Both the position numbers and the translations under genes were made by a program. Shown here piece after piece: positions 10,488 through 56,861 of a stretch of DNA of 64,000 nucleotides (position 1 is its first letter; every line of letters starts with the position of its first letter). The notes beneath the pieces are model-generated. The model searched no databases. It was not told where the DNA came from and saw only the letters and a list, made by a program, of their open reading frames with translations. The stretch is from the IMG/VR virus record IMGVR_UViG_3300043446_005562, positions 62,001 to 126,000 of that record; one strand, given 5' to 3'.

Positions 10488-12815
10488 CTATACGAGGCCT
10501 AACACAGTCTTTAATTTATTGATGACTTCGGTTGCCTCAATTGATTTAGAACACTCAAACATTCGGTCTGTGCCCTTGTGTATGGGACACCAATTCCAAT
10601 CGCCTGGATCGAGTCGATGCGTGTTGAAACAGCCCGAGCACTTGTTGGAAGGTGCGCATATTCGGTGAGTGTTATGAAGAGTCTCAGTGTAGTCAAATGA
10701 AAAACCTGAAATTAGAATCAATGGAGTAGTCGTTGCCCAGGCAAGCCAGCTTAAACCGCTGCCTATTCCAACAAAGGCTTGCGACTCTTCCAATTCCCGA
10801 ATCACGGTTGAGAGCGGACCTGACTCAAGTTTTCTAATACCGGTTGGATGAGAATTGCCCATGAACCCGTCCTCCTCTCGAGAGAGTAATACCACTTCAT
10901 AGCCTCGCTCATTACACCAATCAACAACCTCTTGCCAGCCGGTTGGATTATTCCAATACTTTGCTTGGCAGGTGCCGTGAATTCCAATTGCGATTTTCTT
11001 CTTCTTTTCAACCTTTGGAATCTGAATGAGCGGTCTGGTCTCTTGATAGGCTAACCCTAAAATATCAAATGCGCATTTTTGCATAGGCTGGTCCTTGACC
11101 TCCCTGACATTTCGGGCCAGGTCAATTTCGTTCTGGTCATTGTAGTACCAGCCGATGTTGTACATCGCAACAATATTGTCCACCACCTCGCCCGGATTTA
11201 CAAATTCAATTTCCGGATACTGGTCCTTGAACATGTAATTCATGTGCGTTGAACAGACCACCTGGCAACCGTGCTTCTTTCTAAACTCTTCAACCGCTGG
11301 AAACCAGGCTAGGCTGTCTCCAAGCGAGCTTGAATCTAATGAAATGTAGACCCTGCGATCTTTGAGCACAATCGGCTCGTTAACAATCATTCTGCCGCTC
11401 TTGACGTCCGTGACTTGCACTCGCCAGTCGGTGTAAAACTTGCGGCTTGCCTTGACCCACATGTTTCTTTTGATTGTATCGCGATGAATGGTCCTACCTG
11501 AGGTTTGATCTATGAATTCAACTAGGTATTCGTCCTGAGGTCCCCCGGTTATCTCTACGTGAGGCCCGCCAACGAAATGATAGTTAATAACGAATTCTGC
11601 TTCGCGACTCTTGTTCACCTCTCTGATGTGATCTGACCGTTTAGCAATATGATTAGCGGCAAGCTCAGCAACCCTGTCCCAATTAAAATCCGAATGGATT
11701 TGAGCAGATTCCCTAACCGCCTTTTTTCGATATTCGGCTGAATTTTGATACACGTCCAGCATGACCCGGCCCAGGTCCTCAAAATCGGGCTCATAATAAT
11801 TGCCGCTTGCCCCATTGAAATGATTGTAGTCCGCGTCCCTTGCTGGTACCTGACCCAGTATTTTAACTGGATGACCCTTACCCTCAGCAAATTCAAGCTG
11901 ACCTGAGCAGTTTGAGTAGATTGCTGGCACTCCGCATGCCATTGCCTCGATTAGAGGTAGATTCCAACCCTCAGAGCGGGCACACGATAAAAAGGCACCA
12001 CATGATTTTAAAAGGTTAACATACTCTTTTCTGTCTGGAAAATGAATCACCTTGATACGGTCATCGTTGAGTCCAAAATGGGCTAGCCGTTTTTCGGTTG
12101 TCTCAAGGCCATCGCCTGAAAATGGATTATCGATTGAGACAATGAGGTCGACAGGCTCTTCTTTTTTGAATGTTTTTAAAAAGGTCTCAACAATCTCTTT
12201 GGTTGATTTTCGGTAATCCCAACGGCCGGCTAAAAAGAATTTAAAACGACCGTCCTGGGTCAATTCGTGTTTGGCTCCCGGGTCCGGATAGAACACTTGA
12301 GTGTCCACCCCCTCCGGAATAACAAAGATTTTTTCGGCTGGATAGCCTTGCGCAATGGTACAGTCGCGTTGCCATTTTGAAGGCACCCACATTTCATCAA
12401 ACTCCAGCAGTCGCTTAAAGAAATTTTCAGGCTGTTGAGTGGTCTCCCAAACGTTATAGGCTATTCGATAGTTCTGGTAATCGTGATAGAAGTAATGATG
12501 ATCGGTTTCATTTAGCACCAGGTCAATCTCGGCCTCACCCGGATTGGGCCAGGCCTCGTACATTTTAAACTCCATTAATCTCTGGTCCGGCGTCCACAGG
12601 GATTGCTCATGCAGCAAGGTCTTCATCCGGTCCGTTAGATAGGGTTCCTGATTGTGGGGCTCTTCTGACATGCCCTGCCAGGTTTTACCCACCGTAAAAT
12701 TTCTGATCTCAAGAGGCACTCTTTCGGAGAGCTTTGTAAAAAAGGATTGTGCGTGATTGTTGTAACCGGTCGAGCCTATGAATGAGGTATGAACCTTGAT
12801 TTTTGGAAGAGTCAC
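10488..12815 (-). CDS. Bifunctional glycosyltransferase: GT4 domain plus TibC/Aah-like autotransporter O-heptosyltransferase domain
   Basis: GT4: EGWNLPLIE (EX7E), GRWDYRK. C-terminal part: SSSLGDSLAWF, FVGIGSGLSWLAW and a four-Cys CSGC...WCP...FECSK motif like the Fe site of TibC. GTG start. Confidence 0.88.
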   Translation of the reverse strand: MTLPKIKVHTSFIGSTGYNNHAQSFFTKLSERVPLEIRNFTVGKTWQGMSEEPHNQEPYLTDRMKTLLHEQSLWTPDQRLMEFKMYEAWPNPGEAEIDLVLNETDHHYFYHDYQNYRIAYNVWETTQQPENFFKRLLEFDEMWVPSKWQRDCTIAQGYPAEKIFVIPEGVDTQVFYPDPGAKHELTQDGRFKFFLAGRWDYRKSTKEIVETFLKTFKKEEPVDLIVSIDNPFSGDGLETTEKRLAHFGLNDDRIKVIHFPDRKEYVNLLKSCGAFLSCARSEGWNLPLIEAMACGVPAIYSNCSGQLEFAEGKGHPVKILGQVPARDADYNHFNGASGNYYEPDFEDLGRVMLDVYQNSAEYRKKAVRESAQIHSDFNWDRVAELAANHIAKRSDHIREVNKSREAEFVINYHFVGGPHVEITGGPQDEYLVEFIDQTSGRTIHRDTIKRNMWVKASRKFYTDWRVQVTDVKSGRMIVNEPIVLKDRRVYISLDSSSLGDSLAWFPAVEEFRKKHGCQVVCSTHMNYMFKDQYPEIEFVNPGEVVDNIVAMYNIGWYYNDQNEIDLARNVREVKDQPMQKCAFDILGLAYQETRPLIQIPKVEKKKKIAIGIHGTCQAKYWNNPTGWQEVVDWCNERGYEVVLLSREEDGFMGNSHPTGIRKLESGPLSTVIRELEESQAFVGIGSGLSWLAWATTTPLILISGFSFDYTETLHNTHRICAPSNKCSGCFNTHRLDPGDWNWCPIHKGTDRMFECSKSIEATEVINKLKTVLGLV

Positions 12816-12895: not shown

Positions 12896-13657
12896 TTAAG
12901 TACTGATTATGAAGGCTGGGCATCTATAAAAATCAACACCGGCTTGGCCCTCCCAGACGTTATTTGGAGAGTTCTTTGCTGCATCAAGAAACTGGGCCTG
13001 ATGAGCTAATGATTCACCGGTATGATGATCGAGTATGTCTAAATTAACGTTGTAACCGTTGTTAAGATCCTGATTTACAATGGACCAGTAATATCTGACT
13101 CCGCCGTTTGCTCCACTGGTCGATTGGCTTGTACCATTACCACCGGCTGCAATATTGCCGTAAAAATCTACTCCGCCACCGGCTGGCCACATTTGAGATG
13201 GTGGCGGCGCAAACGTTATGCCAGGGATTTGAAAAATCCACTCACTCCAAAGACGTATGTTAACATCAATATTGGTGTTTGGATCATTGGTTACAACTTC
13301 AAGGCGCCCTCGATTGTCAAAGGGCCAGTGATCATATCCTTTAAAATCTCCCCATCGTATTTTGCCATTGCTCCACGCATAATTATAGATATTTTCGCCA
13401 GATGTGCTATTGCGATTAATATAATAAGAAGTTCCTGAATATGTTCCAGCCGTAATGTAGCCGTTCATTGAGCTATGGGGAGCAGGATTCGAAGAATCTA
13501 GATCAAATTGTGCAATATCGCCTGCCGCAAGACTGGCTGTTCCGTTTTGAGTGAATGCTCTGATCAAACTATTGGTCGAGGTTGTGCCGACTGATGTGCC
13601 GTTCCATCCAACTCTCACGCTGGAGCCGCTCTGCATTACGTATGGACTTGTTGCCAT
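12896..13657 (-). CDS. Probable fibre-associated virion protein
   Basis: 253 aa, G/N/S-rich beta-type composition; start overlaps the stop of the giant fibre gene. Confidence 0.6.
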   Translation of the reverse strand: MATSPYVMQSGSSVRVGWNGTSVGTTSTNSLIRAFTQNGTASLAAGDIAQFDLDSSNPAPHSSMNGYITAGTYSGTSYYINRNSTSGENIYNYAWSNGKIRWGDFKGYDHWPFDNRGRLEVVTNDPNTNIDVNIRLWSEWIFQIPGITFAPPPSQMWPAGGGVDFYGNIAAGGNGTSQSTSGANGGVRYYWSIVNQDLNNGYNVNLDILDHHTGESLAHQAQFLDAAKNSPNNVWEGQAGVDFYRCPAFIIST

Positions 13658-16600
13658 TAACTTAGTTTATTTTTTAAGTCCTCAATCTGGGCCTGCTGTT
13701 CCTTGATTGCCTCAATCAGGACCGAAACCAGATTTGCATAGGAAACTGCTTTGGTACCGTCCGGATTGGTGAAGACCACCTGCGGGAATGCCGCTTCCAT
13801 CTCCTGCGCAATGACTCCAGCGTAAACTCTAGTCTGGTCTTCTTGATCGTTACGTGTGAAGGTTACACCGCGCATTGCCTTTACCTTAGCCAGGGCGTCT
13901 GTGATGGTTTCAACATTATCCTTAACCGATCGATCTGAAAAGGCTATAATATTACCGGCTGCATAGATATCTCCAGTACCACCGCCGACCGTACCAACTT
14001 CAAGCGTATAACCTGGAGTTGCACCAGCATTCACGCTTAATCTCGCATTGGTTTGATCCCAATAGAGTTGATTCGTATCATCAACTGCTGCACCCGTTGC
14101 TGGGTAATAAGCAACATAGCCTGCATTACCGGAGTTTACCGTACCCGAACCTCCACCGCCGGAAATCGTAACGTCCGCCTGGCTACCCGAAGCGGCAACG
14201 GTTGCGCCCGACACAAAGTTAATAGAGGTAGCGCTTGAAACAATGGTGGTTCCAGCTTGTTTAACCGAGACAGCTGATGCGGTTCCAGAAGTTCCGCTTG
14301 AGCCAGAAGTTCCTGAAGAACCCGCTGCTCCTGTTGCGCCGCTTGTTCCTGATGATCCAGAAGTTCCTGACGAACCTGCGGGACCAGTCGCTCCAGTAGC
14401 ACCGCTTGTTCCTGAAGAACCTGAAGTTCCTGAAGAACCTGAAGTTCCTGACGAACCTGCTGCACCGGTTGCTCCGCTTGTACCTGAAGAACCTGAAGTT
14501 CCTGAAGAACCAGCTGCACCGGTTGCTCCGCTTGTGCCAGAAGAACCTGAAGTTCCGTCTTTTCCATTAAATACCCATGATACTGTGTAGTAAGAGGTTG
14601 TGTTCACTATACCAGTTCCAGCGAGTAGGGTATTTAATTGTATGTCGTAGTATGTTGTCTGATTTGTGAAAGTTCCAACTTTCCATGCTCCAATTGCTGC
14701 GTTGTTGCCAACCTCTGTTATTTGAAGATAAGAGACATTTCCTGCTGCGAGCATTGTGCCCAATGTATTAAACCAAGTTGCGTATGCTGTGCCAAATGTG
14801 TCCTGTCTTGAAATACTTAATTTAGTAGCTGTCCCAAGGTTAGTTGTGTCTAATTTGAATTGACCGAGACCTGGTGAAGAATATGCAAGCGCACTATTAT
14901 CAAACCTCCATCGACCTGAGTTTGAACCGTCATTACCTGCTGCTCCAGCCGCTCCGGTTGCTCCGCTTGTTCCACTAGAACCTGAAGTTCCCGAAGAGCC
15001 TGAAGTTCCAGAAGAACCTGCTGCTCCAGTAGCACCGCTTGTTCCGCTACTTCCACTTGTTCCAGAAGAACCGGCTGCACCGGTTGCTCCACTTGTGCCA
15101 GAAGAACCCGAAGTTCCACTAGAGCCTGATGATCCGGAAGTTCCTGAAGAACCTGCCGCACCGGTTGCTCCGCTTGTTCCTGAAGAACCGGACGTACCTG
15201 ACGAACCAGCAGGACCTGTTGCTCCGGTTGCTCCACTTGTACCAGAAGAACCAGATGTTCCGCTTGATCCAGAAGAACCAGAAGTTCCGCTAGAGCCTGA
15301 TGATCCAGAAGTTCCTGAAGAACCTGCTGCACCAGTTGCGCCGCTTGTTCCAGAACTGCCTGATGTGCCAGAAGATCCTGAACTACCTGATGTGCCTGAG
15401 CTTCCAGAAGAACCTGATGTTCCACTACTTCCACTTGTTCCAGATGAACCTGCAGGACCAGTCGCTCCAGTAGCACCACTAGTTCCTGAAGAACCTGAGC
15501 TACCTGACGTACCTGAACTACCGGACGTTCCCGAAGAACCGGCTGCTCCAGTCGCTCCACTCGTACCTGAAGAACCCGAAGTTCCTGAGCTACCGGCAGC
15601 ACCAGTTGCTCCGCTAGTTCCTGATGAACCAGATGTTCCGCTTGAACCAGACGAGCCGCTAGTTCCCGATGAACCTGAAGAGCCTGATGTTCCACTAGAG
15701 CCTGATGTACCGCTTGCTCCACTTATACCGCTAGTTCCGCTTGAACCGGATGAACCGCTTGTTCCTGAAGAACCGGCAGCACCCGTTGCTCCACTCGTAC
15801 CTGAAGAACCTGAAGTTCCTGAGCTGCCGCTTGAACCTGAAGTTCCCGAAGAACCTGAACTGCCGCTTGTTCCGCTAGAACCGCTAGTTCCCGAAGAACC
15901 TGCTGCACCAGTTGCACCGCTTGTTCCAGAAGAACCAGATGTTCCCGAAGAACCCGCTGCTCCGGTTGCTCCACTAGTTCCTGATGAACCGCTAGTTCCT
16001 GAAGATCCTGAAGAGCCGCTAGTTCCTGATGAACCGCTTGAGCCAGATGTTCCCGAGCTTCCGCTAGTTCCTGAAGAACCTGAGGAACCGCTAGTTCCGC
16101 TTGAACCTGAAGTTCCAGATGAGCCAGATGTTCCTGAGCTACCGCTTGTTCCACTTGAACCACTTGTTCCTGAAGAACCGGCTGTACCGTTTTTACCATT
16201 AAACCACCAGCTAATTACATGTTCATTACCGTTAGTTAAAGTTCCAGTGCCGGCATTCAAGTTTAAATCAACTTGTACAACGTTTCCAACTGGAGAACCA
16301 ACTGCTGTGATTGCATAAACTCCTCCAATTCCAGTAGTTAATTCAAAAATTTCTAAGTATGCTTGATTACCTGCAGTTACTTGAGTTTGAATAGCCGACC
16401 ACCATTGAGTTGAATTGAATGAACTTGGTCTGTATGCCGTTATATTTACATAAAATTTGTTAATTAAACCGACGTTCGTTGTAGCAGTTACACCCGCATA
16501 ATAGTTAATGTTTGTAGAACCTGGTGTAGTTGAAGCGCTTGAATTGAATATCCATGAAACGCCGTTTCCTATTGAACTTGCACCCGAAGTACCTGAGCTG

Positions 16601-19600
16601 CCGCTTGTTCCACTAGAACCTGAAGTACCTGAGCTACCTGAAGATCCGGATGTTCCAGATGATCCCGATGTACCTGATGAACCTGACGATCCACTTGTAC
16701 CGCTGCTTCCACTTGAACCTGATGTTCCACTTGAACCTGAACTGCCTGAAGTACCCGATGAACCGCTAGTACCGCTAGAACCGGAAGTTCCAGATGAACC
16801 TGAAGAACCTGATGTACCGCTTGATCCAGACGAGCCAGATGTTCCTGACGAACCGCTAGTACCAGAGGAACCTGAAGAACCACTAGTTCCGGATGAACCG
16901 CTTGAACCGCTTGTTCCAGACGAGCCAGAACTTCCTGAAGTACCACTTGAACCCGAGCTTCCAGATGTACCAGAAGAGCCAGATGTTCCAGAGCTACCTG
17001 AAGTTCCGCTAGATCCAGATGAACCTGAAGTACCTGAAGAACCTGAGCTACCAGAAGTTCCACTTGATCCTGATGTACCAGAAGAACCTGATGTTCCTGA
17101 GCTTCCACTAGTTCCTGATGAACCTGAAGAGCCAGATGTTCCCGAAGAACCACTACTACCACTTGTTCCACTTGAACCCGATGTTCCGCTACTACCCGAT
17201 GAGCCGCTAGTTCCTGAAGAACCGCTGCTTCCTGATGTCCCACTTGAACCACTTGTTCCAGAAGAACCCGAAGATCCTGATGTGCCAGATGAGCCTGAAG
17301 AACCTGAAGTTCCTGAGCTTCCGCTTGTTCCTGAGCTACCCGAACTACCAGAAGTTCCACTTGAACCTGAAGTACCTGAAGATCCAGAAGTTCCAGAAGA
17401 ACCGCTTGAGCCTGATGTTCCTGAGCTACCAGATGTTCCCGAAGAACCAGAAGTACCTGAAGATCCAGAAGTACCTGAGCTGCCTGAAGAACCTGAAGTT
17501 CCAGATGAACCGGACGAACCAGAGGTTCCAGAGCTTCCTGAAGTTCCTGAACTACCTGATGTTCCAGAGCTACCGGATGTACCGGAAGAGCCTGAGCTTC
17601 CGCTTGTTCCGCTTGAACCTGAACTTCCGCTAGTTCCGGATGAACCGCTTGAGCCTGAAGTACCACTACTACCTGATGAACCTGAAGAACCACTTGTTCC
17701 GCTTGAACCTGAAGAACCGCTAGTACCTGAACTTCCCGAAGTACCTGATGAGCCAGACGTTCCTGAAGAACCTGAAGAACCAGAAGTTCCGCTTGAGCCT
17801 GAGCTTCCTGATGTACCGCTACTTCCACTTGTACCACTTGAGCCAGAAGTTCCTGACGAACCGCTTGAACCAGAGGTACCGCTACTACCTGATGAACCTG
17901 ACGTTCCTGAAGAACCAGAAGAACCCGATGTTCCTGAGCTACCGCTTGTACCACTTGAACCTGATGTTCCACTGCTGCCTGATGAACCGCTAGTACCAGA
18001 AGAACCTGAAGTACCAGAAGATCCACTTGAACCAGAGGTACCAGAACTTCCTGAAGAGCCGGATGTTCCAGAGCTTCCGCTTGTACCAGATGAACCTGAA
18101 CTTCCAGAGGTTCCAGATGAACCACTAGAACCTGAAGTTCCAGAGCTTCCTGATGTACCCGATGAGCCTGAGGTTCCAGCGCTTCCGCTAGTACCAGATG
18201 AACCGCTTGATCCGGACGTACCATTTACTCCAGAAAGACCAGATGTTCCACTTGAGCCTGATGTACCTGAACTTCCTGAAGAGCCAGATGTTCCAGAGCT
18301 TCCGCTTGTACCTGAACTTCCAGATGTTCCAGATGAACCGCTTGAGCCCGAAGTCCCTGAGCTACCAGATGTTCCGCTTGAGCCTGACGAGCCGGATGTT
18401 CCGGAAGAACCTGAGCTGCCAGACGTGCCTGAAGATCCAGAAGTACCTGAGCTTCCACTTGTTCCGGATGAACCTGAAGAGCCGCTTGTTCCGGATGAAC
18501 CTGAACTACCGCTTGTTCCACTTGAACCGCTTGAACCTGATGTTCCTGAAGAACCTGAGGTGCCAGAACTTCCTGAAGTACCAGAAGAACCTGAACTACC
18601 GCTTGTTCCACTAGAACCGCTTGAACCTGATGTTCCTGAAGAACCGCTCGTTCCTGAAGAACCAGAAGAACCTGATGTTCCTGAAGAACCTGATGTACCA
18701 GATGACCCTGATGTTCCACTTGAGCCTGATGAGCCACTTGTTCCTGAACTACCCGAACTTCCACTTGTACCTGAAGAACCACTAGTTCCTGATGAACCTG
18801 AACTTCCAGATGTTCCTGACGAACCAGAAGAACCTGATGTTCCGGAACTACCACTAGTTCCTGATGAACCACTAGTTCCAGAAGAACCCGAAGATCCGCT
18901 TGTTCCGGATGAACCGCTTGAGCCGCTAGTTCCAGAGCTACCTGATGTTCCAGATGAACCTGACGTACCTGAACTACCACTAGTTCCAGAAGAACCGCTT
19001 GAACCTGATGTTCCTGAAGAACCTGAACTACCTGAAGTTCCTGAAGAACCGCTAGTTCCTGATGAACCTGAAGAGCCAGATGTTCCTGAGCTACCACTTG
19101 TTCCACTTGAACCAGATGTACCTGAACTACCTGAAGTTCCTGAAGAACCGCTGCTTCCCGATGTCCCACTTGAACCACTTGTTCCAGAAGAACCCGAGGA
19201 TCCTGATGTGCCAGATGAGCCTGAAGAACCTGAAGTTCCTGAGCTTCCACTAGTTCCGCTTGAACCTGATGTACCACTAGAGCCTGAACTGCCTGAAGTA
19301 CCTGAACTACCACTTGAGCCAGAAGTTCCTGACGAACCGCTTGAGCCTGAAGTACCACTACTACCTGATGAACCGCTAGTACCAGAGGAACCTGACGTTC
19401 CTGAAGAACCGCTTGTTCCTGATGAACCGGATGAGCCAGAAGTTCCACTTGAACCGGACGAACCAGAGGTTCCAGAGCTTCCTGAAGTTCCGCTTGAGCC
19501 AGAGCTACCGCTTGTTCCTGATGAACCTGAGCTACCGGATGTACCGGAAGAGCCTGAACTTCCGCTTGTTCCTGATGAACCCGACGTTCCTGAAGAACCA

Positions 19601-22089
19601 CTTGTACCGCTAGAACCGGAAGTTCCAGATGAACCTGAAGAACCTGATGTACCGCTTGATCCAGACGAGCCAGATGTTCCTGAGCTTCCACTTGTTCCGG
19701 ATGAACCGCTTGAACCGGATGTTCCAGAAGAACCAGAAGTTCCGCTTGAGCCTGATGTTCCTGAGCTACCCGAAGAACCTGAGGTTCCAGATGAACCGCT
19801 AGATCCAGAAGTGCCACTTGAGCCAGAAGTTCCTGACGAACCAGAAGATCCGCTTGTACCGCTACTACCTGAAGAACCAGATGTACCGCTTGAACCTGAA
19901 GAACCAGATGTACCGCTTGAACCTGAAGTACCAGATGAGCCACTTGAACCTGAAGTACCGGATGAGCCAGAAGTACCGCTACTTCCGCTAGAACCAGATG
20001 TTCCACTTGAACCTGAAGTACCTGAACTTCCAGAAGAACCGCTTGTTCCCGATGAGCCTGAAGAACCGCTTGAACCAGAAGTTCCAGACGAACCTGAAGT
20101 ACCAGATGATCCGCTTGAACCAGAAGTACCTGAAGAACCGGATGAACCTGAAGAACCGGAAGTTCCACTTGAACCAGATGAGCCGCTAGTGCCACTTGAG
20201 CCTGAAGAACCTGATGTTCCTGAAGATCCGGAAGTTCCGCTTGAACCTGATGTTCCTGAGCTTCCAGATGTACCGCTACTTCCAGAAGAACCGCTTGTTC
20301 CAGAGCTTCCTGACGTTCCAGAAGATCCTGAGCTACCGCTTGTTCCAGAAGAACCACTTGAACCTGATGTACCGGATGTTCCACTTGCTCCACTTGCTCC
20401 ACTTGTTCCAGACGAGCCTGACGTTCCTGAAGAACCAGAAGAACCAGATGTTCCAGAGCTACCAGAAGAGCCAGAGGTTCCCGAAGAACCTGATGTACCG
20501 CTACTTCCAGAAGAACCGCTAGTTCCTGAACTTCCACTTGTTCCTGACGAACCAGAAGAGCCAGATGTTCCTGAGCTACCTGAAGTTCCGCTAGAGCCTG
20601 ATGATCCAGAAGTACCAGATGAACCGCTTGTTCCACTAGAACCCGAAGAACCTGATGTTCCAGACGATCCTGATGAACCTGAAGTTCCGCTACTACCACT
20701 TGTTCCAGATGAACCAGAGCTTCCCGATGTTCCGGAGCTGCCGCTTGTACCAGATGAACCTGAGGAACCTGATGTTCCGCTACTACCACTAGTGCCAGAT
20801 GAACCAGATGTTCCAGAAGAACCACTTGATCCGCTTGTACCGCTTGAGCCAGACGTACCTGAGCTACCACTAGTTCCTGACGAACCTGAAGAGCCGGATG
20901 TTCCCGAAGATCCAGATGAACCGCTTGTTCCACTTGAACCAGCTGTACCTGAACTTCCGCTTGTTCCTGATGAACCTGAAGAACCAGAAGTTCCCGAAGA
21001 ACCACTAGTGCCAGAAGAACCTGAACTGCCGCTTGTACCAGATGAACCTGATGTTCCAGAGCTGCCAGATGTACCTGACGAACCACTAGTTCCTGAAGAG
21101 CCTGAACTTCCAGATGTTCCAGAAGATCCTGATGAGCCGCTAGTTCCCGAAGAACCAGATGTTCCAGAAGAACCGCTTGTTCCAGACGAACCACTTGAGC
21201 CAGACGTACCTGAGCTACCTGATGTACCACTTGAACCTGATGTGCCCGATGAACCTGAACTTCCACTTGTTCCTGACGAACCAGAAGAACCCGATGTTCC
21301 TGAGCTACCACTTGAACCGCTAGTTCCACTAGAACCTGATGTACCAGACGAGCCGCTAGAACCCGAAGTTCCTGATGAGCCGCTTGAACCGGACGTTCCA
21401 CTAGAACCGGCTGTTCCAGATGAACCGCTAGTTCCGCTTGAACCAGAAGAACCAGATGTTCCCGAGCTACCCGAAGTTCCAGAAGATCCAGAGCTACCCG
21501 AGGTTCCGCTACTTCCGGAAGAGCCGGATGTACCCGAGCTGCCAGAAGTACCTGAACTTCCTGATGTTCCGCTTGAACCGCTTGAACCTGAAGTTCCAGA
21601 AGAACCGCTTGTACCACTACTTCCGGAAGAACCTGAAGTACCACTTGAGCCGGATGTTCCGGATGAACCAGATGAACCGGATGTGCCCGAAGAACCGCTA
21701 GTTCCTGACGAACCAGCTGCGCCTGAACCGCCCTGTATCATGGTGAACATATTGTCACCTTCATATATTATAAGATATTTAGCATGAGCTACGGTAAATG
21801 GTTTATAGGTAGTTGTTCCAATGTTTACTCCATTTACGTACACCGTTAACGCACTATCACTTGAACTTTTTTGAAGTTGAGGTCCAGTTGAGGTAATGTT
21901 ACCGCTCGGGTCAGTTATCTCAAAGGTCTCGCCTTCGTAAATTGTTCCAGTTGAAATACTTGGCAATTGAATAACCGAGGATGATCCGCCAGCACCAGAT
22001 CCACCAATTTTGAATTCAAAATATAATTGAGTATTCAGTGAATGTGGGCCGGTTCCCGTTAACGTTTGTGTGCTCTTAAAAACTGCCAT
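13657..22089 (-). CDS. Giant collagen-like (Gly-Ser/Thr-Ser)n fibre protein with C-terminal intramolecular chaperone (Peptidase S74) domain
   Basis: 2810 aa; three Gly-X-Y blocks (573, 142 and 32 triplets by coordinates); C-terminal FSDRSVKDN...GVIAQE...LIEAIKEQQAQIEDLK. Confidence 0.9.
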   Translation of the reverse strand: MAVFKSTQTLTGTGPHSLNTQLYFEFKIGGSGAGGSSSVIQLPSISTGTIYEGETFEITDPSGNITSTGPQLQKSSSDSALTVYVNGVNIGTTTYKPFTVAHAKYLIIYEGDNMFTMIQGGSGAAGSSGTSGSSGTSGSSGSSGTSGSSGTSGSSGSSGTSGSSGTSGSSGSSGTSGSSGTSGSSGTSGSSGSSGTSGSSGSSGTSGSSGTSGSSGSSGTSGSSGTAGSSGTSGSSGSSGTSGSSGSSGTSGSSGTSGSSGSSGTSGSSGSSGTSGSSGSSGTSGSSGTSGSSGTSGSSGSSGTSGSSGTSGSSGTSGSSGSSGTSGSSGSSGTSGSSGTSGSSGTSGSSGTSGSSGSSGTSGSSGTSGSSGSSGTSGSSGTAGSSGTSGSSGSSGTSGSSGSSGTSGSSGTSGSSGTSGSSGSSGTSGSSGTSGSSGTSGSSGSSGTSGSSGTSGSSGSSGTSGSSGTSGSSGSSGTSGSSGSSGTSGSSGTSGSSGSSGTSGSSGTSGSSGSSGTSGSSGTSGSSGSSGTSGSSGTSGSSGSSGTSGSSGSSGTSGSSGTSGASGASGTSGTSGSSGSSGTSGSSGSSGTSGSSGTSGSSGSSGTSGSSGTSGSSGTSGSSGTSGSSGSSGTSGSSGSSGTSGSSGSSGSSGTSGSSGSSGTSGSSGTSGSSGSSGSSGTSGSSGSSGTSGSSGTSGSSGSSGTSGSSGTSGSSGSSGTSGSSGTSGSSGSSGTSGSSGSSGTSGSSGSSGTSGSSGTSGSSGSSGTSGSSGSSGTSGSSGTSGSSGTSGSSGSSGTSGSSGTSGSSGSSGTSGSSGSSGTSGSSGTSGSSGTSGSSGTSGSSGSSGTSGSSGSSGTSGSSGSSGTSGSSGTSGSSGSSGTSGSSGSSGTSGSSGTSGSSGTSGSSGSSGTSGSSGSSGTSGSSGSSGTSGSSGSSGTSGSSGTSGSSGTSGSSGSSGTSGSSGSSGTSGSSGTSGSSGSSGTSGSSGTSGSSGTSGSSGTSGSSGSSGTSGSSGTSGSSGSSGTSGSSGSSGTSGSSGTSGSSGTSGSSGTSGSSGSSGTSGSSGSSGTSGSSGTSGSSGTSGSSGSSGTSGSSGSSGTSGSSGTSGSSGSSGTSGSSGSSGTSGSSGTSGSSGTSGSSGSSGTSGSSGTSGSSGSSGTSGSSGSSGTSGSSGTSGSSGTSGSSGSSGTSGSSGSSGTSGSSGSSGTSGSSGTSGSSGTSGSSGSSGTSGSSGSSGTSGSSGTSGSSGSSGTSGSSGTSGSSGTSGSSGSSGTSGSSGTSGLSGVNGTSGSSGSSGTSGSAGTSGSSGTSGSSGTSGSSGSSGTSGSSGSSGTSGSSGTSGSSGSSGTSGSSGSSGTSGSSGTSGSSGSSGTSGSSGTSGSSGTSGSSGSSGTSGSSGSSGTSGSSGSSGTSGSSGTSGSSGTSGSSGSSGTSGSSGSSGTSGSSGTSGSSGTSGSSGSSGTSGSSGSSGSSGTSGSSGSSGTSGSSGSSGTSGSSGSSGTSGSSGTSGSSGTSGSSGTSGSSGSSGTSGSSGSSGTSGSSGTSGSSGTSGSSGTSGSSGSSGTSGSSGTSGSSGTSGSSGSSGTSGSSGTSGSSGSSGTSGSSGSSGTSGSSGTSGSSGSSGTSGSSGSSGTSGSSGTSGSSGSSGTSGSSGSSGTSGSSGTSGSSGTSGSSGTSGSSGSSGTSGSSGSSGTSGSSGTSGSSGTSGSSGSSGTSGSSGSSGTSGSSGSSGTSGSSGSSGTSGSSGTSGSSGSSGTSGSSGSSGTSGSSGTSGSSGTSGSSGSSGTSGSSGSSGTSGSSGSSGTSGSSGTSGSSGSSGTSGSSGTSGSSGTSGASSIGNGVSWIFNSSASTTPGSTNINYYAGVTATTNVGLINKFYVNITAYRPSSFNSTQWWSAIQTQVTAGNQAYLEIFELTTGIGGVYAITAVGSPVGNVVQVDLNLNAGTGTLTNGNEHVISWWFNGKNGTAGSSGTSGSSGTSGSSGTSGSSGTSGSSGTSGSSGSSGTSGSSGTSGSSGSSGTSGSSGSSGTSGSSGTSGATGAAGSSGTSGSSGTSGATGAAGSSGTSGSSGTSGSSGSSGTSGSSGSSGTSGSSGTSGATGAAGSSGTSGSSGSSGTSGISGASGTSGSSGTSGSSGSSGTSGSSGSSGTSGSSGTSGATGAAGSSGTSGSSGTSGATGAAGSSGTSGSSGTSGSSGSSGTSGATGATGPAGSSGTSGSSGTSGSSGSSGTSGSSGSSGTSGSSGTSGATGAAGSSGTSGSSGSSGTSGSSGSSGTSGSSGTSGATGATGPAGSSGTSGSSGTSGATGAAGSSGTSGSSGSSGTSGSSGTSGATGAAGSSGTSGSSGTSGATGAAGSSGTSGSSGTSGSSGTSGATGAAGAAGNDGSNSGRWRFDNSALAYSSPGLGQFKLDTTNLGTATKLSISRQDTFGTAYATWFNTLGTMLAAGNVSYLQITEVGNNAAIGAWKVGTFTNQTTYYDIQLNTLLAGTGIVNTTSYYTVSWVFNGKDGTSGSSGTSGATGAAGSSGTSGSSGTSGATGAAGSSGTSGSSGTSGSSGTSGATGATGPAGSSGTSGSSGTSGATGAAGSSGTSGSSGTSGTASAVSVKQAGTTIVSSATSINFVSGATVAASGSQADVTISGGGGSGTVNSGNAGYVAYYPATGAAVDDTNQLYWDQTNARLSVNAGATPGYTLEVGTVGGGTGDIYAAGNIIAFSDRSVKDNVETITDALAKVKAMRGVTFTRNDQEDQTRVYAGVIAQEMEAAFPQVVFTNPDGTKAVSYANLVSVLIEAIKEQQAQIEDLKNKLS
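14278..14565 (-). repeat. Gly-X-Y block 3 of fibre 1 (32 triplets; GSS/GTS/GAT/GAA/GPA)
   Basis: 288 nt = 32 x 9. Confidence 0.9.
14920..16197 (-). repeat. Gly-X-Y block 2 of fibre 1 (142 triplets)
   Basis: 1278 nt = 142 x 9; includes GAT-GAA and GAT-GPA variants. Confidence 0.9.
16576..21732 (-). repeat. Gly-X-Y block 1 of fibre 1 (573 triplets, almost all GSS/GTS)
   Basis: 5157 nt = 573 x 9; degenerate 9-nt DNA repeat. Confidence 0.92.
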
Positions 22090-22121: not shown

Positions 22122-25100
22122 TTATCGTGGTCGATTAGTTCCGACCAAGAAATTTGCCCAACCGCTCAATGATGGAGGTAGGGCATTCCAGCTACCTGCT
22201 GGAAAAGGAGTTTGTCCACTAGATACAACGGTTCCACCAATCCAATAGTCATCGGTATGTGTCACATTATCGTTGAATAAAGTGTATGAAGAGACTTCTT
22301 CTGTGTGGAAATAAACGTCATCCAACAGAATACCTTTACTTGTACCTTGAGGATCTGTGTATATGAAATTTGGAGAACCTCCAGTTAGTCCAAGCGAAGC
22401 AAATGTCGTTTGGTGAATACTTAATCTGGATTCAACAGTATATGAAGAATTTAGATCTAAAAGCATCCAACTTTCGCTAGAAGCAGTTGCTGTTCCTGGG
22501 GTAAGTACGCTGTTTGGACGGCGGTTATACATTTCAAAATGGCAACCTCTAATGTATGCAGTAGACTGATCTAGCGATACAAGATAGCAGTACACATTAT
22601 TGTTTGCGCCAGTATCAACAATCTCACAATTTTCCAAATACAGAGATGAATATCTTGCTAAAATTGCATAGGCCCCGTTTGATGAATGGTCTACCTGTAT
22701 TTTGATATTATTCATCTTTAGTGAGCCGTTTGCTACAAATATAGCGTTCATAGTCGGCACTGATATTACGCTGTTATAACGACCCGATCCAGTTATTGTC
22801 AACTCAGCAGCAGTCAACCAAGTATTACCAGCAGAGCCTGATACAGCTAATGTTACGCCTGGCTCAAAGTAGAGAGATACATTGTATGAACTCGATACAG
22901 TTACCGTAGTCGATTCAGTATAGGCTCCTCTAAATACATGAATTGTATAGCTACCTGCTCCAAGAGCAGAAAGGCCATTTAAAGCGCCGTTGATTGTTTG
23001 CCAAGGTAAATCTAATCTACCTAATTGTGCAGTAGTATTATTTCCATTCGGATCAACAAATAAAGTTTGAGCATATCCTATTGCTTGGAAAGAGGTTCCA
23101 CTTGTTCCGCTTGATCCTGAAGTTCCACTTGAGCCAGAAGAACCCGATGTGCCTGACGAACCAGAAGTTCCAGAAGATCCGCTTGAACCTGACGTTCCAG
23201 AGCTTCCACTGGTTCCTGACGAACCACTAGTTCCGCTTGAGCCACTAGAACCAGATGTTCCTGAAGATCCTGAAGTACCTGACGAACCAGACGAGCCAGA
23301 TGTTCCGGCTGAACCTGACGTACCAGATGAACCTGAACTACCTGATGTTCCGGAAGAGCCTGAGCTTCCACTAGTTCCACTAGAACCAGATGTACCACTT
23401 GAACCTGATGAACCTGAAGTTCCTGAGCTACCTGATGTTCCAGATGAGCCACTGGAACCGCTTGTGCCCGAAGAACCTGAAGTTCCACTAGATCCCGAAG
23501 ATCCAGATGTTCCCGAAGAACCACTTGATCCAGATGTTCCGGACGATCCACTAGTTCCTGATGAACCTGAACTACCTGATGTTCCCGAAGAACCGCTAGA
23601 GCCTGACGTACCTGAGCTTCCACTAGTTCCTGATGAACCTGAAGTTCCTGAGCTACCTGATGTTCCAGATGAGCCACTTGAACCTGAAGTGCCACTAGAT
23701 CCTGAAGATCCTGAAGTTCCGCTTGAGCCACTAGTTCCACTAGAACCAGATGTTCCTGAAGAACCGCTAGATCCTGACGTACCGGAGCTTCCACTAGTAC
23801 CTGAAGAACCGCTACTACCGGATGTTCCCGAAGAGCCCGAAGTTCCGCTACTTCCTGAAGATCCTGAGGTACCAGACGATCCTGAACTACCTGATGTTCC
23901 GCTTGAACCGCTTGTTCCTGAAGAACCTGAACTACCTGATGTTCCCGAAGAACCTGAAGTACCACTTGACCCTGATGTACCTGATGAACCTGAGCTTCCG
24001 CTAGTACCAGATGAACCACTTGAGCCTGAAGTTCCTGAGCTTCCGCTAGTTCCTGATGAACCTGATGTACCGCTTGAGCCAGATGTACCGCTTGAACCTG
24101 AAGAACCACTTGTTCCGCTTGAACCTGAAGAACCACTTGTTCCGCTTGAACCTGAAGAACCTGATGTACCTGATGAACCTGAGCTTCCTGAAGTTCCGCT
24201 TGAACCGCTTGTTCCTGAAGAACCCGAGCTTCCACTAGTTCCGGATGATCCACTTGAACCCGACGTTCCCGACGAACCGCTTGTTCCACTTGAACCAGAA
24301 CTTCCGCTTGTTCCAGAAGAGCCTGAGCTTCCTGAAGTACCACTTGAGCCAGATGTTCCACTAGAACCACTACTACCTGAAGTACCAGATGATCCCGATG
24401 TACCGGAAGATCCACTTGTTCCACTAGATCCACTTGAGCCTGATGTACCAGATGATCCTGAAGTACCAGATGAACCGCTTGTTCCGGATGAACCTGAGCT
24501 TCCTGAAGTACCGCTTGAACCTGATGTTCCTGAGCTTCCGCTAGTACCTGATGAACCTGACGAACCGCTTGTTCCGCTTGAACCGCTTGAACCTGATGTC
24601 CCAGAAGATCCACTAGTTCCTGACGAACCCGATGTACCTGAACTTCCTGATGAACCTGATGTACCAGAGCTGCCTGATGTTCCAGATGATCCCGAAGATC
24701 CTGAAGTACCAGATGAACCGCTGCTTCCTGATGTGCCCGAAGAACCAGAGGTTCCACTTGAACCTGATGTACCTGAGCTACCACTAGAACCGCTAGTACC
24801 GGATGAGCCGCTAGAACCCGAAGTTCCTGATGAACCTGAACTTCCACTAGTTCCGCTAGATCCACTTGAGCCGGAAGTTCCTGATGAACCTGACGTACCC
24901 GATGATCCGGAAGTTCCACTTGAACCGCTGCTACCTGATGAACCTGATGTTCCGCTAGAACCTGATGTTCCTGATGAACCTGAACTGCCGCTTGTTCCTG
25001 AAGAACCGCTTGAACCTGAGGTTCCTGAAGAGCCTGAACTTCCAGAAGTACCGGATGAACCGGCTGTTCCGCTAGATCCTGATGTTCCAGATGAACCACT

Positions 25101-28100
25101 CGTACCCGAAGAGCCTGAGCTACCGGATGTACCAGATGAACCGCTTGATCCAGATGTTCCGGAAGATCCACTAGTTCCTGAAGAACCACTTGAACCTGAA
25201 GTTCCGCTACTTCCTGATGAACCTGCTGTACCAGAGCTGCCAGATGTTCCAGAAGATCCTGAGCTTCCGGAAGTGCCAGAGGATCCACTAGAACCTGAGG
25301 TTCCTGAGCTTCCGCTAGTTCCTGAAGAACCCGAAGTTCCGCTAGAACCGGAACTACCTGCTGTACCGGAACTTCCACTAGTTCCTGACGTACCTGAGCT
25401 ACCAGATGTACCGGCTGATCCACTTGTTCCAGAAGAACCGCTTGAGCCCGAAGTTCCGCTAGATCCACTTAAACCTGATGTTCCAGAGCTTCCACTAGTT
25501 CCTGACGAACCACTTGAGCCCGATGTTCCTGACGAACCGCTTGTTCCGGAGCTACCTGAAGTCCCGGCGCTACCGCTGGTCCCTGATGAGCCTGAGCTTC
25601 CACTAGTTCCACTTGAGCCGGATGAGCCAGAGCTTCCCGATGTTCCAGAAGAACCACTAGAACCAGAAGTTCCTGACGAACCGCTAGTTCCTGAAGTACC
25701 ACCACCTACTATGAGATGTGCATGAAAGAACGTTTGAGAGCGTTGATTACTTCCGAAAATAGTGATATTGCTTGAATTTCCACTGTATACTGTGAAATCT
25801 ACATAATCGGTTGTACCGTTCATGTAAATTATTTTATCGTTACCCTGTGTTAAACCAACTGTTGTTGTTATTTGATTTTGCCAAATCGCCTCTTGGCTAT
25901 TTCCATTCTTACGAATTTGCGAATTGTATTGATTTGTGGTTATAGCGCCAGGATCAAATAAAACTTGTAGAGTTATTTGATAATACCCTGAAATGGTCGG
26001 TTTAAATTGATAGGTTGACTGATTCCACCAGTTATTTGGATCAAAATCATCAATGAATTGGATTACAGTATCGCTATTAGGTGTTACTGTTTGGTTAGCA
26101 GCTAGGTAACCCTGAACAACATAATTAGAGGCAACTAAACCAGTTGGAGAAGTTCCACTAGTTCCAGAAGAACCGGAAGATCCGGATGTTCCGCTTGAAC
26201 CTGATGAGCCAGACGTTCCAGAGCTTCCCGATGTACCAGAGCTTCCGCTAGTTCCAGATGAACCTGAACTACCGCTGGTACCGCTTGAACCAGAACTACC
26301 TGACGTACCCGAACTACCCGAAGAGCCAGATGTTCCACTTGAACCTGAAGTTCCGGCGCTACCGCTTGTTCCAGAAGAACCGCTAGTTCCGGAGCTACCG
26401 CTAGAACCTGAAGTTCCAGAAGAACCCGCTGTTCCAGAAGATCCACTGCTACCTGAAGTTCCTGAAGAACCGCTTGACCCTGATGTTCCAGAGCTTCCAC
26501 TTGTTCCACTACTTCCTGATGAGCCAGATGTTCCTGAAGAACCACTACTTCCACTTGTTCCTGAACTACCTGATGTACCACTACTTCCTGATGTTCCAGA
26601 GCTTCCGCTTGTTCCACTTGAACCTGAAGAGCCTGAAGTTCCGCTTGAGCCAGATGTTCCTGACGAACCGCTTGAGCCCGAAGTTCCAGACGAGCCAGAT
26701 GTTCCTGACGAACCGCTAGTTCCTGAGCTTCCTGATGTTCCTGAAGAACCTGAGCTTCCAGAAGTTCCTGATGAACCACTTGTTCCTGATGAACCGCTTG
26801 TTCCTGAAGAGCCCGATGTTCCGGAAGATCCACTTGAACCTGAGGTTCCAGATGTTCCGCTTGCGCCGCTTGCGCCGCTAGTACCAGAAGTCCCGGATGA
26901 CCCTGAGCTTCCAGAAGTTCCTGAACTGCCTGAAGAACCTGATGAACCTGAGCTTCCTGAAGTACCACTTGAGCCAGACGTTCCCGAAGAGCCCGATGTT
27001 CCAGAAGATCCTGAACTTCCGCTAGTTCCTGAAGAGCCTGAACTACCGCTGGTACCGCTTGAACCAGAACTACCTGACGTACCTGAGCTTCCGGAAGTTC
27101 CAGAAGAGCCTGAGGTACCACTACTACCACTCGAACCTGAGGTACCAGATGAACCCGAAGTTCCTGACGAACCGCTTGAGCCTGACGTACCACTACTACC
27201 GGATGAACCTGAAGTACCTGAACTACCACTAGTTCCTGAAGAACCGGCTGTTCCAGATGAACCAGAGCTTCCGCTAGTTCCCGAAGAACCTGAGCTGCCT
27301 GAAGTACCAGAAGAACCGGATGATCCACTTGAACCAGATGTTCCCGAAGAACCCGAGCTTCCACTGGTTCCTGAACTACCAGAGGTTCCTGAACTGCCTG
27401 AAGAACCTGACGTACCTGAACTACCAGAGGTTCCACTAGAACCTGAAGTTCCTGAGCTGCCGCTTGAACCTGAAGTTCCCGAAGAACCTGAGCTTCCAGA
27501 AGTTCCTGAGCTGCCTGATGTTCCCGACGATCCTGAACTACCAGAGGTTCCACTTGAACCTGAAGTACCTGAGCTGCCTGATGTTCCGGATGAACCTGAG
27601 CTTCCACTAGTTCCACTAGAACCTGAAGTTCCCGAAGAACCTGAGCTTCCAGAAGTTCCTGAGCTGCCTGATGTTCCCGACGTACCCGAAGAACCTGAAG
27701 TTCCGCTAGAACCTGATGTACCTGAGCTGCCTGATGTTCCAGATGAACCTGAGCTTCCACTAGTTCCACTAGAACCTGATGTACCAGAGCTGCCGCTTGT
27801 TCCCGAAGAGCCTGACGTACCCGAAGAACCTGAAGTTCCGCTAGAACCTGATGTACCTGAACTGCCTGATGTTCCAGAGCTTCCAGATGTACCAGATGAA
27901 CCTGAAGTTCCGGCAACTTGGCCTACTGAAGTCAATACAAATGAATAATATGAATTGCCTTCCGTGTAAAAATCGATTGAGTGAGCATTGTTATCTAAAT
28001 TATTAAGATAGATTCTGACTCTCATTCGGTCAGTTGGATTAATAGTGGTTGTCGGTAAAGTTATGTCTAGCGTATTTTCAGCTGGCACAACGGCTGACAC

Positions 28101-49780: not shown

Positions 49781-49795
49781 ATGTTAATAGTATTT

Positions 49796-53428: not shown

Positions 53429-53432
53429 TTAG

Positions 53433-55658: not shown

Positions 55659-55670
55659 GTAGTTTTAAAA

Positions 55671-56819: not shown

Positions 56820-56861
56820 TTTACTAGTTTCTTTTTTTCTGTTTTTATTTATCAAAACCCA

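Follow-up and report, generated by a model that had tools for sequence, protein, structure and literature searches.

A proline-free, putatively glycosylated collagen-like fibre protein encoded by a large freshwater phage

An uncultivated 252-kb freshwater myovirus-like phage encodes a tail-fibre-like protein with 573 uninterrupted Gly-Ser/Thr-Ser-type triplets that contain neither proline nor charged residues, and the gene is located close to that of an enzyme of a family that attaches sugars to protein serines, so that the protein is probably a very long sugar-stabilised collagen of an undescribed type. The gene was found in a 64,000-nucleotide stretch of DNA (positions 62,001 to 126,000 of the IMG/VR record IMGVR_UViG_3300043446_005562), hereafter referred to as the window, whose coordinates are used throughout. 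The initial annotation of this stretch, which was made from the sequence alone, reported a proline-free Gly-X-Y tract of 573 triplets at 16576-21732, and this observation is correct. The interpretation offered with it is only partly supported, as detailed below. The features considered here, all on the minus strand, are as follows.

9866..10477 (-), p203, a protein of unknown function that travels with the glycosyltransferase in 9 viral contigs
10488..12815 (-), a 775-aa two-module glycosyltransferase with an N-terminal GT4 module and a C-terminal TibC/AAH-type protein O-glycosyltransferase module (aa 404-771, window 10503-11606)
12896..13657 (-), p253, a 253-aa protein of unknown function whose ATG overlaps the fib1 stop codon (TAATG)
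13657..22089 (-), fib1, the 2810-aa fibre ORF (stop codon included)
13660..13938 (-), fib1 C-terminal region from the predicted cleavage residue Ser2718 to the end (Pfam Peptidase_S74 match at aa 2718-2772, window 13774-13938)
13939..14277 (-), fib1 distal tip domain (aa 2605-2717), the presumed receptor-binding end after cleavage
14278..14565 (-), third Gly-X-Y tract of fib1, 32 triplets
14566..14919 (-), knob K2 of fib1 (aa 2391-2508), a predicted beta-sandwich with one helix
14920..16197 (-), second Gly-X-Y tract of fib1, 142 triplets (GSS/GTS with GAT/GAA, 2 Pro)
16198..16575 (-), knob K1 of fib1 (aa 1839-1964), a folded domain interrupting the collagen-like shaft
16576..21732 (-), main Gly-X-Y tract of fib1 (aa 120-1838), 573 triplets with 909 Ser and 225 Thr
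21733..22089 (-), fib1 N-terminal non-collagen domain (aa 1-119), a presumed virion anchor
22122..29666 (-), fib2, a second fibre of the same class, 2514 aa, with Gly-X-Y runs of 68, 196 and 290 triplets separated by folded domains

A scripted scan of the fib1 translation finds Gly at every third residue from aa 120 to aa 1838. The triplets are 340 GSS, 223 GTS, 3 GAS and 2 GTA, with one each of GGS, GAA, GLS, GVN and GSA, and the tract contains no Pro and no D, E, K, R or H. The Pfam Collagen model (PF01391) matches throughout, at 946.8 bits against a cut-off of 27.2. Chance is excluded as an explanation of this register, since all 1146 first and second bases of the Gly codons are G while the third bases are mixed (entropy 1.47 bits). 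The initial annotation described the mix of GTS and GSS as aperiodic, but it is quasi-regular: Thr at X recurs every 2 or 3 triplets in 220 of 224 gaps, and the Y position is Ser in 568 of 573 triplets and never Thr. The Gly-X-Y runs are interrupted only by folded domains of 118-172 aa and never by short breaks.

The DNA encoding the tract is not a simple repeat. Synonymous codons differ throughout, there are 118 distinct 9-nt units, the longest exact repeat is 80 bp, and every 101-mer is unique. Independent public sequencing runs hold 57-91% of the tract's 31-mers, perfect pieces of 250-700 nt tile much of it, and the runs that hold it come from freshwater, river, reservoir and estuary samples and include RNA libraries. 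Of 31 variant sites seen in these runs, 28 are synonymous in the minus-strand frame and the remaining 3 are Ser/Thr swaps at X (chance probability 4e-12), whereas the two indels observed are 9 and 18 nt long and thus keep the register. The same variant pattern fits only the minus-strand frame, and the plus-strand ORF 16508..21787 and other overlapping ORFs were therefore rejected as by-products of the repeat. No single record was shown to span the whole tract, the Logan contigs being too fragmented for this, so its total length and the order of its segments, which come from a metagenome assembly, are not proven by one molecule.

The presence of a Peptidase_S74 intramolecular-chaperone domain at the C-terminus, which the initial annotation took to imply trimer assembly and self-cleavage, is confirmed at the level of sequence. 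Pfam PF13884 scores 48.3 bits (E 1.3e-12) against a cut-off of 22, and a scan of the phage's own genome gives 56 bits. The motif SDRSVK supplies Ser2718 and Lys2723, five residues apart, and it aligns to SDRRIK of the solved C-terminus of the S16 long tail fibre (PDB 6F45_A, E 3e-6); the catalytic role of this dyad at the cleavage site is taken from the endosialidase and T5 literature. A tblastn search with the C-terminus returns annotated phage tail fibres, and the neighbouring genes include a baseplate wedge, a gp15-like protein and a T4-type terminase. Homology to the shaft or tip domains of the T4-type long tail fibre proteins gp34-gp37 was not found, only the C-terminal chaperone region matching annotated tail fibres.

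The remaining non-collagen parts of fib1 have few relatives. K1 and K2 are paralogues (BLASTP E 2e-11). Word-indexed protein searches with K1 and K2 among giant proteins found nothing, and an exhaustive search with K1 among 1.8 billion representative proteins returned a single weak, distant hit. K2 was predicted by AF2 with a pLDDT of 86.9; no solved relative was identified by Foldseek against the PDB (no hit at E<0.001) or by a wide VIA search (best Z 6.6), although 39 BFVD models matched at E<0.001 with TM up to 0.85, most of them "Collagen triple helix repeat" proteins of uncultured phages, cyanophages and giant viruses. In cultured phages, tblastn of K2 and of the first fib2 knob and megablast of the structural module found nothing, and the N-terminus has no match there either. 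The N-terminal domain has no relatives in IMG/VR and only weak leads in the atlas searched, and a single-sequence AF2 prediction of it was unusable (pLDDT 35.6); its role as an anchor is inferred from position only, and the assignment of fib1 as a tail rather than a head or neck fibre is therefore unproven. The function of the distal tip, which lies between the last collagen run and the predicted cleavage serine, is likewise inferred. No family was found for p253 or p203 in Pfam, PHROGs, NCBIfam or the atlas; judging by position only, p253 may be a tip adhesin or an assembly factor.

The initial annotation also suggested that unmodified GSS/GTS triplets should be poorly stable and that modification is needed, and this suggestion gains strong circumstantial support from the glycosyltransferase encoded two genes downstream of fib1. 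The enzyme matches Pfam PF00534 and PF01075, and its C-terminal half scores 260.5 bits (E 2e-77, aa 404-771) with the TIGR04414 equivalog model, above the cut-off of 200, and matches TibC (PDB 4RAP_A) with an E of 8e-57. The TibC/AAH family hyperglycosylates serines of repetitive proteins. The iron-finger residues Cys339/342/358/370 and the catalytic base Asp110 of TibC, with roles assigned in PMC4358343, are all conserved in the alignment. Of the sugar-binding residues, Thr226, Lys230 and Trp305 are conserved, Arg286 aligns to Val with an Arg two residues later, and the donor-selectivity residue Pro300 aligns to Gly. The enzyme lies in a phage structural module with no autotransporter among its neighbours, and the genome contains no gmhA and no rfaE domain II for ADP-heptose synthesis, only a generic PfkB-like kinase scoring below the cut-off. 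By family it would thus work like a TibC/AAH protein O-heptosyltransferase (BAHT) but on a different target, with a sugar that cannot be assumed to be heptose. A pattern search confirmed no such glycosyltransferase in bacterial genomes.

Homologues of the enzyme occur in 12 of 120 IMG/VR viral contigs retrieved only by the repeat pattern. In the reverse direction, 24 of 33 enzyme-selected loci with full flanks carry a Ser/Thr-rich Gly-X-Y run, in three different gene arrangements and at 39-63% enzyme identity, although linkage among related phages is in part inherited synteny. The tract is longer than vertebrate fibrillar collagen domains, as the initial annotation pointed out, but it is not exceptional for its class: more than 120 viral contigs carry the motif, orthologues of fib2 with the same N-terminal domain carry 353+639, 869 or 1149 triplets, the last of these unbroken, and published surveys report prokaryotic collagen-like chains of up to 2000 triplets (PMC11923368). 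The length of about 490 nm proposed for the tract is a contour length; treated as a worm-like chain with assumed persistence lengths, it would have a root-mean-square reach of roughly 120-280 nm.

We consider it most likely, with moderate confidence, that fib1 is a structural fibre, probably a tail fibre, of the trimeric, O-glycosylated collagen-like type. In this view, three chains are brought into register from the C-terminus by the S74 chaperone, the two in-line knobs re-nucleate or clamp the trimer, and the tracts of 573, 142 and 32 triplets zip into a collagen-type triple helix with a contour length of about 640 nm, after which the chaperone would cut itself off at Ser2718 and expose a tip of about 113 aa. 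Because the tract has neither imino acids nor salt bridges, the helix is proposed to be stabilised, and its surface defined, by dense O-glycosylation of its serines by the TibC/AAH-type enzyme, with the fused GT4 module adding a second sugar. TibC modifies Ser but not Thr (PMC4358343), which agrees with the near-absolute Ser at Y, and there is a precedent in (Gly-Pro-Thr)10, which is a random coil unless galactosylated (PMC11923368). The sequence anatomy, the purifying selection on the register, the family membership of the S74 domain and of the glycosyltransferase, and the gene linkage are established by our analysis, whereas the trimer and the triple helix, self-cleavage, glycosylation itself with the fibre as the enzyme's substrate, the identity of the sugar, the exact tract length, the attachment site on the virion, and a function in extending the phage's reach for host capture are inferred. 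Against the proposed model, all three known stabilising strategies, i.e., imino acids, Lys-Asp/Glu salt bridges and Thr at Y (PMC11923368, PMC8968730), are absent, though these features are typical of collagen helices rather than strictly defining, and the known substrates of TibC are beta-helical autotransporter repeats, so that the true target could instead be the beta-rich tip domains.

Other explanations are possible but less likely. The tract may be glycosylated without being triple-helical, forming a mucin-like bottle-brush of three extended, heavily O-glycosylated chains held together only at the knobs and the C-terminus and acting as a flexible tether or an anti-fouling, protease-resistant spacer. 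A pure Gly/Ser/Thr composition without Pro or charge, which published host-guest and peptide data suggest is poor for triple helices (PMC11923368), the adjacent protein O-glycosyltransferase and the highly variable tract length among orthologues (68 to 1149 triplets) would fit such a spacer. However, a mucin-like spacer does not need Gly at exactly every third residue, and here no Gly is lost in 573 triplets, or in 1149 in a relative, despite saturated synonymous change, while all variants preserve Gly-X-Y; we regard this reading as unlikely. About equally unlikely is an unglycosylated triple helix in which a hydration network of Ser/Thr hydroxyls suffices at cold freshwater temperatures, helped by extreme length, the knob clamps and S74 nucleation, with the enzyme modifying tip domains, other virion proteins or host surface molecules. 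Hydration networks through polar residues are an accepted stabiliser of bacterial collagens (PMC8968730), the habitat is freshwater, river and reservoir, and the C-terminal domain of fib2 looks beta-rich, as are TibC's natural substrates. On the other hand, the common denominator of the enzyme-linked loci is the Ser/Thr-rich Gly-X-Y run while tip domains differ, and a hydration argument would not predict the exclusion of Thr from Y, which matches an enzyme that takes Ser only (PMC4358343).

It is improbable that the length or order of the tract results from a chimeric assembly path through similar repeats of co-occurring phages. Depth inside the tract is 10-1000 times the flank depth in public runs, so many look-alike sequences coexist, and many contigs with this motif end inside the repeat. 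Yet the uniqueness of all 101-mers argues against an artefact, as does a frame that is open for 8.4 kb and runs correctly into the folded and S74 domains, the presence of 87-91% of the tract's 31-mers in runs of other studies, and the assembly of an identical 639-triplet run in six contigs of relatives from different samples. Least likely is a polyglycine-II bundle or another Gly-periodic fold, an alternative also raised in the initial annotation. Gly-rich tripeptide periodicity is used by polyglycine-II sandwiches such as those of snow-flea antifreeze protein or the gp38 adhesin, and the only solved sequence relative of the fib1 C-terminus comes from PDB entry 6F45, the S16 long-tail-fibre distal subunit, reportedly solved together with such an adhesin. 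But antiparallel bundles of this kind need a turn every 6-10 residues, and the tract has none in 1719 residues; in addition, the Pfam Collagen model matches throughout.

Collagen stability is currently explained by hydroxyproline or proline, by Lys-Asp/Glu salt bridges, proposed in 2025 as a universal folding code, or by glycosylated Thr at Y, and the tract described here has none of these although its Gly register is kept with extreme fidelity. It is possible, though this remains a tentative idea, that such fibres define a fourth way to build a collagen triple helix, in which a Gly-(Ser/Thr)-Ser polymer becomes helical only through processive O-glycosylation of its serines by a phage-encoded TibC-type enzyme, giving sugar-sheathed rods or tethers of 0.5-1 micrometre contour length that are common among freshwater phages; this would contradict the proposed universality of the salt-bridge code. 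No description of Gly-Ser-Ser/Gly-Thr-Ser triple helices or of a phage TibC-like enzyme paired with collagen was found in the literature searched, which was incomplete. If the tract is a triple helix, it is a natural minimal system for asking what besides Gly is really needed and would also be a testable case of glycosylation-driven folding with the enzyme encoded next to its substrate. The fibres would have contour lengths several times that of the usual phage tail, and their great length variation between close relatives and abundance in freshwater metagenomes and metatranscriptomes point to a widespread host-capture device that has not been studied. The TibC/AAH protein-serine glycosyltransferases would also move from bacterial autotransporters into phage virion assembly.

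Gly-X-Y runs flanked by trimerising non-collagen domains are already known from phage fibre proteins ("Bacteriophage collagen", Smith et al. 1998). Orf028 of P-SSM2 is 49% Gly-X-Y, with X and Y often Pro, Ser or Thr (PMC1079782), and EPclA of an E. coli O157 prophage has been shown experimentally to be a trimeric triple helix (PMC3368898). EPclA has Pro in nearly half of its X positions and about 22% charged residues, whereas the fib1 tract has neither, is many times longer, and belongs to a protein that ends in an S74 domain and is encoded beside a protein O-glycosyltransferase. The K2-type knob fold, as predicted, is shared (TM 0.65-0.85) with proteins annotated as "Collagen triple helix repeat" in BFVD, from uncultured Caudovirales, cyanophages (S-CAM7, S-H34) and giant viruses (Klosneuvirus, Indivirus); these are database annotations only, and we found no study of them. 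With S74 fibres such as endosialidase tailspikes, the T5 L-shaped fibre pb1 and S16 gp37, fib1 shares the C-terminal domain with its Ser-x4-Lys dyad and a sequence match to the S16 gp37 C-terminus, but the shafts of those fibres are beta-helical or beta-structured and not collagen-like. The TibC/AAH heptosyltransferases acting on TibA/AIDA-I are likewise encoded beside long repetitive Ser-rich fibrous proteins and hyperglycosylate many Ser residues (PMC4358343); here, the enzyme is phage-encoded and fused to a GT4 module, its candidate substrate is a collagen-like tract rather than a beta-helix, and Arg286 and Pro300 differ, so that the donor may not be heptose. Finally, Bacillus BclA with its Gly-Pro-Thr repeats, C. 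difficile BclA3, which has a dedicated glycosyltransferase, SgtA, and Riftia cuticle collagen with galactosyl-Thr contain collagen-like regions that lack hydroxyproline and in which O-glycans on hydroxyl amino acids are thought to stabilise the helix (PMC8968730, PMC7157674, PMC11923368). Those proteins still contain Pro and carry the glycosylated Thr at Y, whereas in the fib1 tract Pro is absent, Thr is at X only, Y is Ser, and the neighbouring enzyme belongs to a different family.

fib1 and fib2 are two very large ORFs on the minus strand, and their positions in the window, together with those of the neighbouring features discussed below, are as follows.

13657..22089, minus strand: fib1, 2810 aa
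16576..21732, within fib1 (residues 120-1838): main Gly-X-Y tract of 573 triplets
22122..29666, minus strand: fib2, 2514 aa
27912-28427, within fib2 (aa 414-585): first in-line knob domain of fib2
22122-23090, within fib2: C-terminal 322 aa
12896-13657, minus strand: 253-aa ORF that follows fib1
10488..12815: 775-aa glycosyltransferase, two genes downstream of fib1
9866-10477, minus strand: 203-aa ORF directly downstream of the glycosyltransferase
41232-43604, minus strand: ORF of a 790-aa protein with a short Pro-rich collagen run at 43413-43502
43604-60500, minus strand: block of very large ORFs

The initial annotation had reported a proline-free run of 573 Gly-X-Y triplets, and scripted counting of the glycine periodicity confirmed it exactly: residues 120-1838 of fib1 are 573 consecutive triplets with no Pro and no charged, aromatic or sulphur residue. 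The tract holds 574 Gly, 909 Ser, 225 Thr, 8 Ala and one each of Val, Leu and Asn. fib1 has two further runs of 142 and 32 triplets, and fib2 has three of 68, 196 and 290; the runs are separated only by folded domains of 118-172 aa, never by short breaks. The local rise in G+C content (0.50 against about 0.40) follows from the codons for Gly, Ser and Thr.

At the DNA level, the tract is not a simple repeat. It contains 118 different 9-nt units, its longest exact repeat is 80 bp and every 101-mer is unique, while Tandem Repeats Finder sees only degenerate periods of 18-153 nt at 60-90% match. All 1146 first and second bases of the Gly codons are G, whereas the third bases are mixed, and Ser at Y is written with both TCN (403) and AGY (165) codons. 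The sequence occurs in many public sequencing runs from other studies, including freshwater DNA (0.91 of sampled 31-mers), river metatranscriptomes from 2018 (0.56-0.87), and reservoir and estuary DNA (0.52-0.66), and perfect pieces of 250-700 nt from these runs tile much of the tract. Of the 31 variant sites listed inside the tract, 28 are synonymous in the minus-strand frame and the other three are Ser/Thr swaps at X; since only 30% of random changes would be synonymous, P = 4e-12. The two insertions seen are 9 and 18 nt. The frame, the gene and strong purifying selection on the Gly-X-Y register are therefore established, and the overlapping ORFs on other frames are by-products. The total length, in contrast, rests on a linear, metagenome-assembled IMG/VR record with a CheckV completeness of 93% and on no single molecule, as no record was shown to span the tract. 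In three of the public runs, the summed contig depth inside the tract (window 16350-22000) is 10 to over 1000 times the flank depth because many look-alike genes coexist in these samples, and GSS/GTS-coding repeats from many other genomes are therefore extremely abundant in freshwater, reservoir and estuary metagenomes. In favour of the assembly, a 639-triplet run in relatives was assembled at identical length in six contigs from different samples.

The mix of GTS and GSS triplets had been described as aperiodic, and this needs correction. Thr at X recurs after 2 or 3 triplets in 220 of 224 gaps, and the tract is therefore built from GTS-GSS and GTS-GSS-GSS units with a weak tendency to alternate (the lag-10 autocorrelation is 0.25 against 0.00 ± 0.06 when the order of gaps is shuffled). 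The Y position is occupied by Ser in 568 of 573 triplets and never by Thr.

The C-terminus of fib1 carries a Peptidase_S74 domain (aa 2718-2772, 48.3 bits against a cut-off of 22). Ser2718 and Lys2723 lie in the motif SDRSVK, which aligns to SDRRIK in the solved C-terminus of the S16 long-tail-fibre distal subunit (6F45), and a tblastn search matched this region to annotated tail fibres of Synechococcus, Vibrio, Rhizobium and other phages. K1 and K2, the knob domains between the Gly-X-Y runs of fib1, are paralogues. K2 is confidently predicted to be a beta-sandwich with one helix (pLDDT 86.9); structure searches revealed no clear solved relative, but 39 predicted viral structures match it at E<0.001 with TM up to 0.85, and nearly all of those with a name are 'Collagen triple helix repeat' proteins of uncultured Caudovirales, cyanophages S-CAM7 and S-H34, and giant viruses. 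K2 is thus a recurrent, unstudied companion domain of viral collagen repeats. The 119-aa N-terminus of fib1 has no recognisable relative. The first knob of fib2 represents a second family of in-line knob domains, unrelated in sequence to K1 and K2, which recurs between Ser/Thr-rich Gly-X-Y runs in seven IMG/VR contigs at 24-57% identity and has no match in cultured phages.

The genome is 252,618 bp long and encodes a T4-type large terminase, whose nearest matches, all below 40% identity, are uncultured megaphages, Sphingomonas phage PAU and Lak phages, as well as a gp15-like tail protein, a baseplate wedge protein, PhoH and a late sigma factor. The phage may belong near the recently named aquatic 'moraphages' (PMC12619734), and the run metadata place it in fresh water. 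The block of very large ORFs at 43604-60500 (2058, 1210, 741, 394 and 1212 aa) matches only PHROGs of unknown function, and its products are probably baseplate or tail components of this jumbo phage. The 790-aa protein has weak tail-fibre PHROG hits and contains a short, conventional Pro-rich collagen run (10 triplets, including GPQ); the same phage therefore also has an ordinary Pro-containing collagen motif.

The key new result concerns the 775-aa glycosyltransferase. Its N-terminal half is GT4, and its C-terminal half (aa 404-771) scores 260.5 bits against a curated cut-off of 200 on TIGR04414, the equivalog model for the autotransporter O-heptosyltransferases AAH and TibC; the same region matches the TibC crystal structure 4RAP at E 8e-57. 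When the alignment was read against the residues defined in the TibC structure paper (PMC4358343), the four iron-finger cysteines (339, 342, 358 and 370), the catalytic base Asp110, and Thr226, Lys230 and Trp305 were found to be conserved, while Arg286 aligns to Val and the donor-selectivity residue Pro300 aligns to Gly. TibC and AAH hyperglycosylate many serines, but not threonines, of long repetitive fibrous proteins in the cytoplasm. A protein-serine glycosyltransferase beside a protein with 909 serines in one tract is a pointed coincidence, which also fits the otherwise odd rule that Y must be Ser and never Thr. It is possible, however, that the enzyme has another substrate: the C-terminal 322 aa of fib2, which gave no Pfam hit, look by eye like a parallel beta-helix of the depolymerase or tailspike type and could be an alternative one. 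No gmhA or rfaE domain II, and no other ADP-heptose pathway gene, was found in the phage genome, so the sugar donor, whichever it is, would come from the host. Outside the window, the genome contig (C1) encodes a 258-aa PfkB-like sugar kinase (C1:203037-203777), which scores 67 bits on the rfaE domain I model, far below its cut-off, and a single GT2-family gene (C1:215245-215724). Of the two small ORFs that flank the glycosyltransferase gene, the 253-aa one has an ATG overlapping the fib1 stop codon (TAATG), suggesting translational coupling; it has no family hit in any of the libraries searched and, from its position, could be a tip adhesin or a fibre assembly factor. The 203-aa ORF, also of unknown family, travels with the enzyme in 9 IMG/VR loci at up to 86% identity.

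The linkage between enzyme and fibre is conserved. An IUPAC scan of IMG/VR for twelve G-[ST-like]-[ST-like] triplets returned at least 120 contigs, and twelve of the 120 loci, fetched with no reference to the enzyme, encode its homologue at 38-60% identity. In the reverse direction, 73 loci were fetched by homology to the enzyme; of these, 47 have a Gly-X-Y run of at least 15 triplets within 10 kb, and in 41 there is a Ser/Thr-rich one. Among the 33 loci with at least 8 kb on both sides, 24 have a Ser/Thr-rich run, located upstream on the same strand, downstream on the same strand or downstream on the opposite strand. The loci without a run are mostly the most distant, single-module hits or short contigs. 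Although part of this linkage is inherited synteny, the different arrangements, the different fibre tips and the 39-63% enzyme identity argue for a functional link.

While the frame, the gene and the selection on its register are demonstrated by the sequence data, glycosylation of the fibre, its trimerisation, the triple helix and self-cleavage are inferred. In the mechanism that we consider the most likely, and somewhat more probable than not, the chains would be hyperglycosylated on Ser in the host cytoplasm and trimerised by the S74 domain, would zip from the C-terminus to the N-terminus through the knobs into a glycan-sheathed triple helix, and S74 would then cleave itself off. The contour length would be 492 nm for the main tract and 641 nm for all three runs of fib1, but as a worm-like chain with a persistence length of 15-100 nm, an assumed range, the main tract would reach only about 120-280 nm. 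We infer that the benefit is a larger capture radius in dilute water, together with a protease-resistant, non-sticky shaft.

Other readings appear less likely. The tract may be a glycosylated but non-helical, mucin-like tether, an unlikely alternative that is hard to square with the perfect Gly register, and it is about equally unlikely that the fibre is an unglycosylated helix held by hydration. An error in the assembled length of the tract is improbable, and a polyglycine-II bundle, which would need turns that are absent, is only a remote possibility.

The observation made in the initial annotation thus holds, and its interpretation is supported in part, being largely sound but overstated on uniqueness and on the distance that the fibre would span. 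The tract is not unusual in length. Orthologues of fib2 share an N-terminal domain of about 200 aa (83-86% identity) but have completely different shafts and tips, with runs of 353 + 639 triplets, a single run of 869 triplets or, on contig IMGVR_UViG_3300027736_000027, a complete 3852-aa ORF with one unbroken 1149-triplet run that has no Pro and no basic residue and whose contour length would be about 986 nm. Fibre length and tip modules are evidently swapped or resized quickly between close relatives. Published surveys report prokaryotic collagen-like chains of up to 2000 triplets (PMC11923368).

What is unusual is the composition. Reviews give Pro at 19-31% of X and Thr at 32-48% of Y in bacterial collagens (PMC8968730), and a 2025 study proposes Lys-Asp/Glu salt bridges as the folding code shared by collagens of all domains and viruses (PMC11923368), whereas the fib1 tract has no Pro, no charge, and Thr only at X. 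In the literature searched, we found no paper on Gly-Ser-Ser/Gly-Thr-Ser helices or on a phage TibC-like enzyme, and the system is of interest mainly because the putative substrate and its candidate modifying enzyme sit side by side. Phage collagen as such has been known since 1998, and Ser/Thr-containing Gly-X-Y fibres were noted in cyanophage P-SSM2 (PMC1079782).
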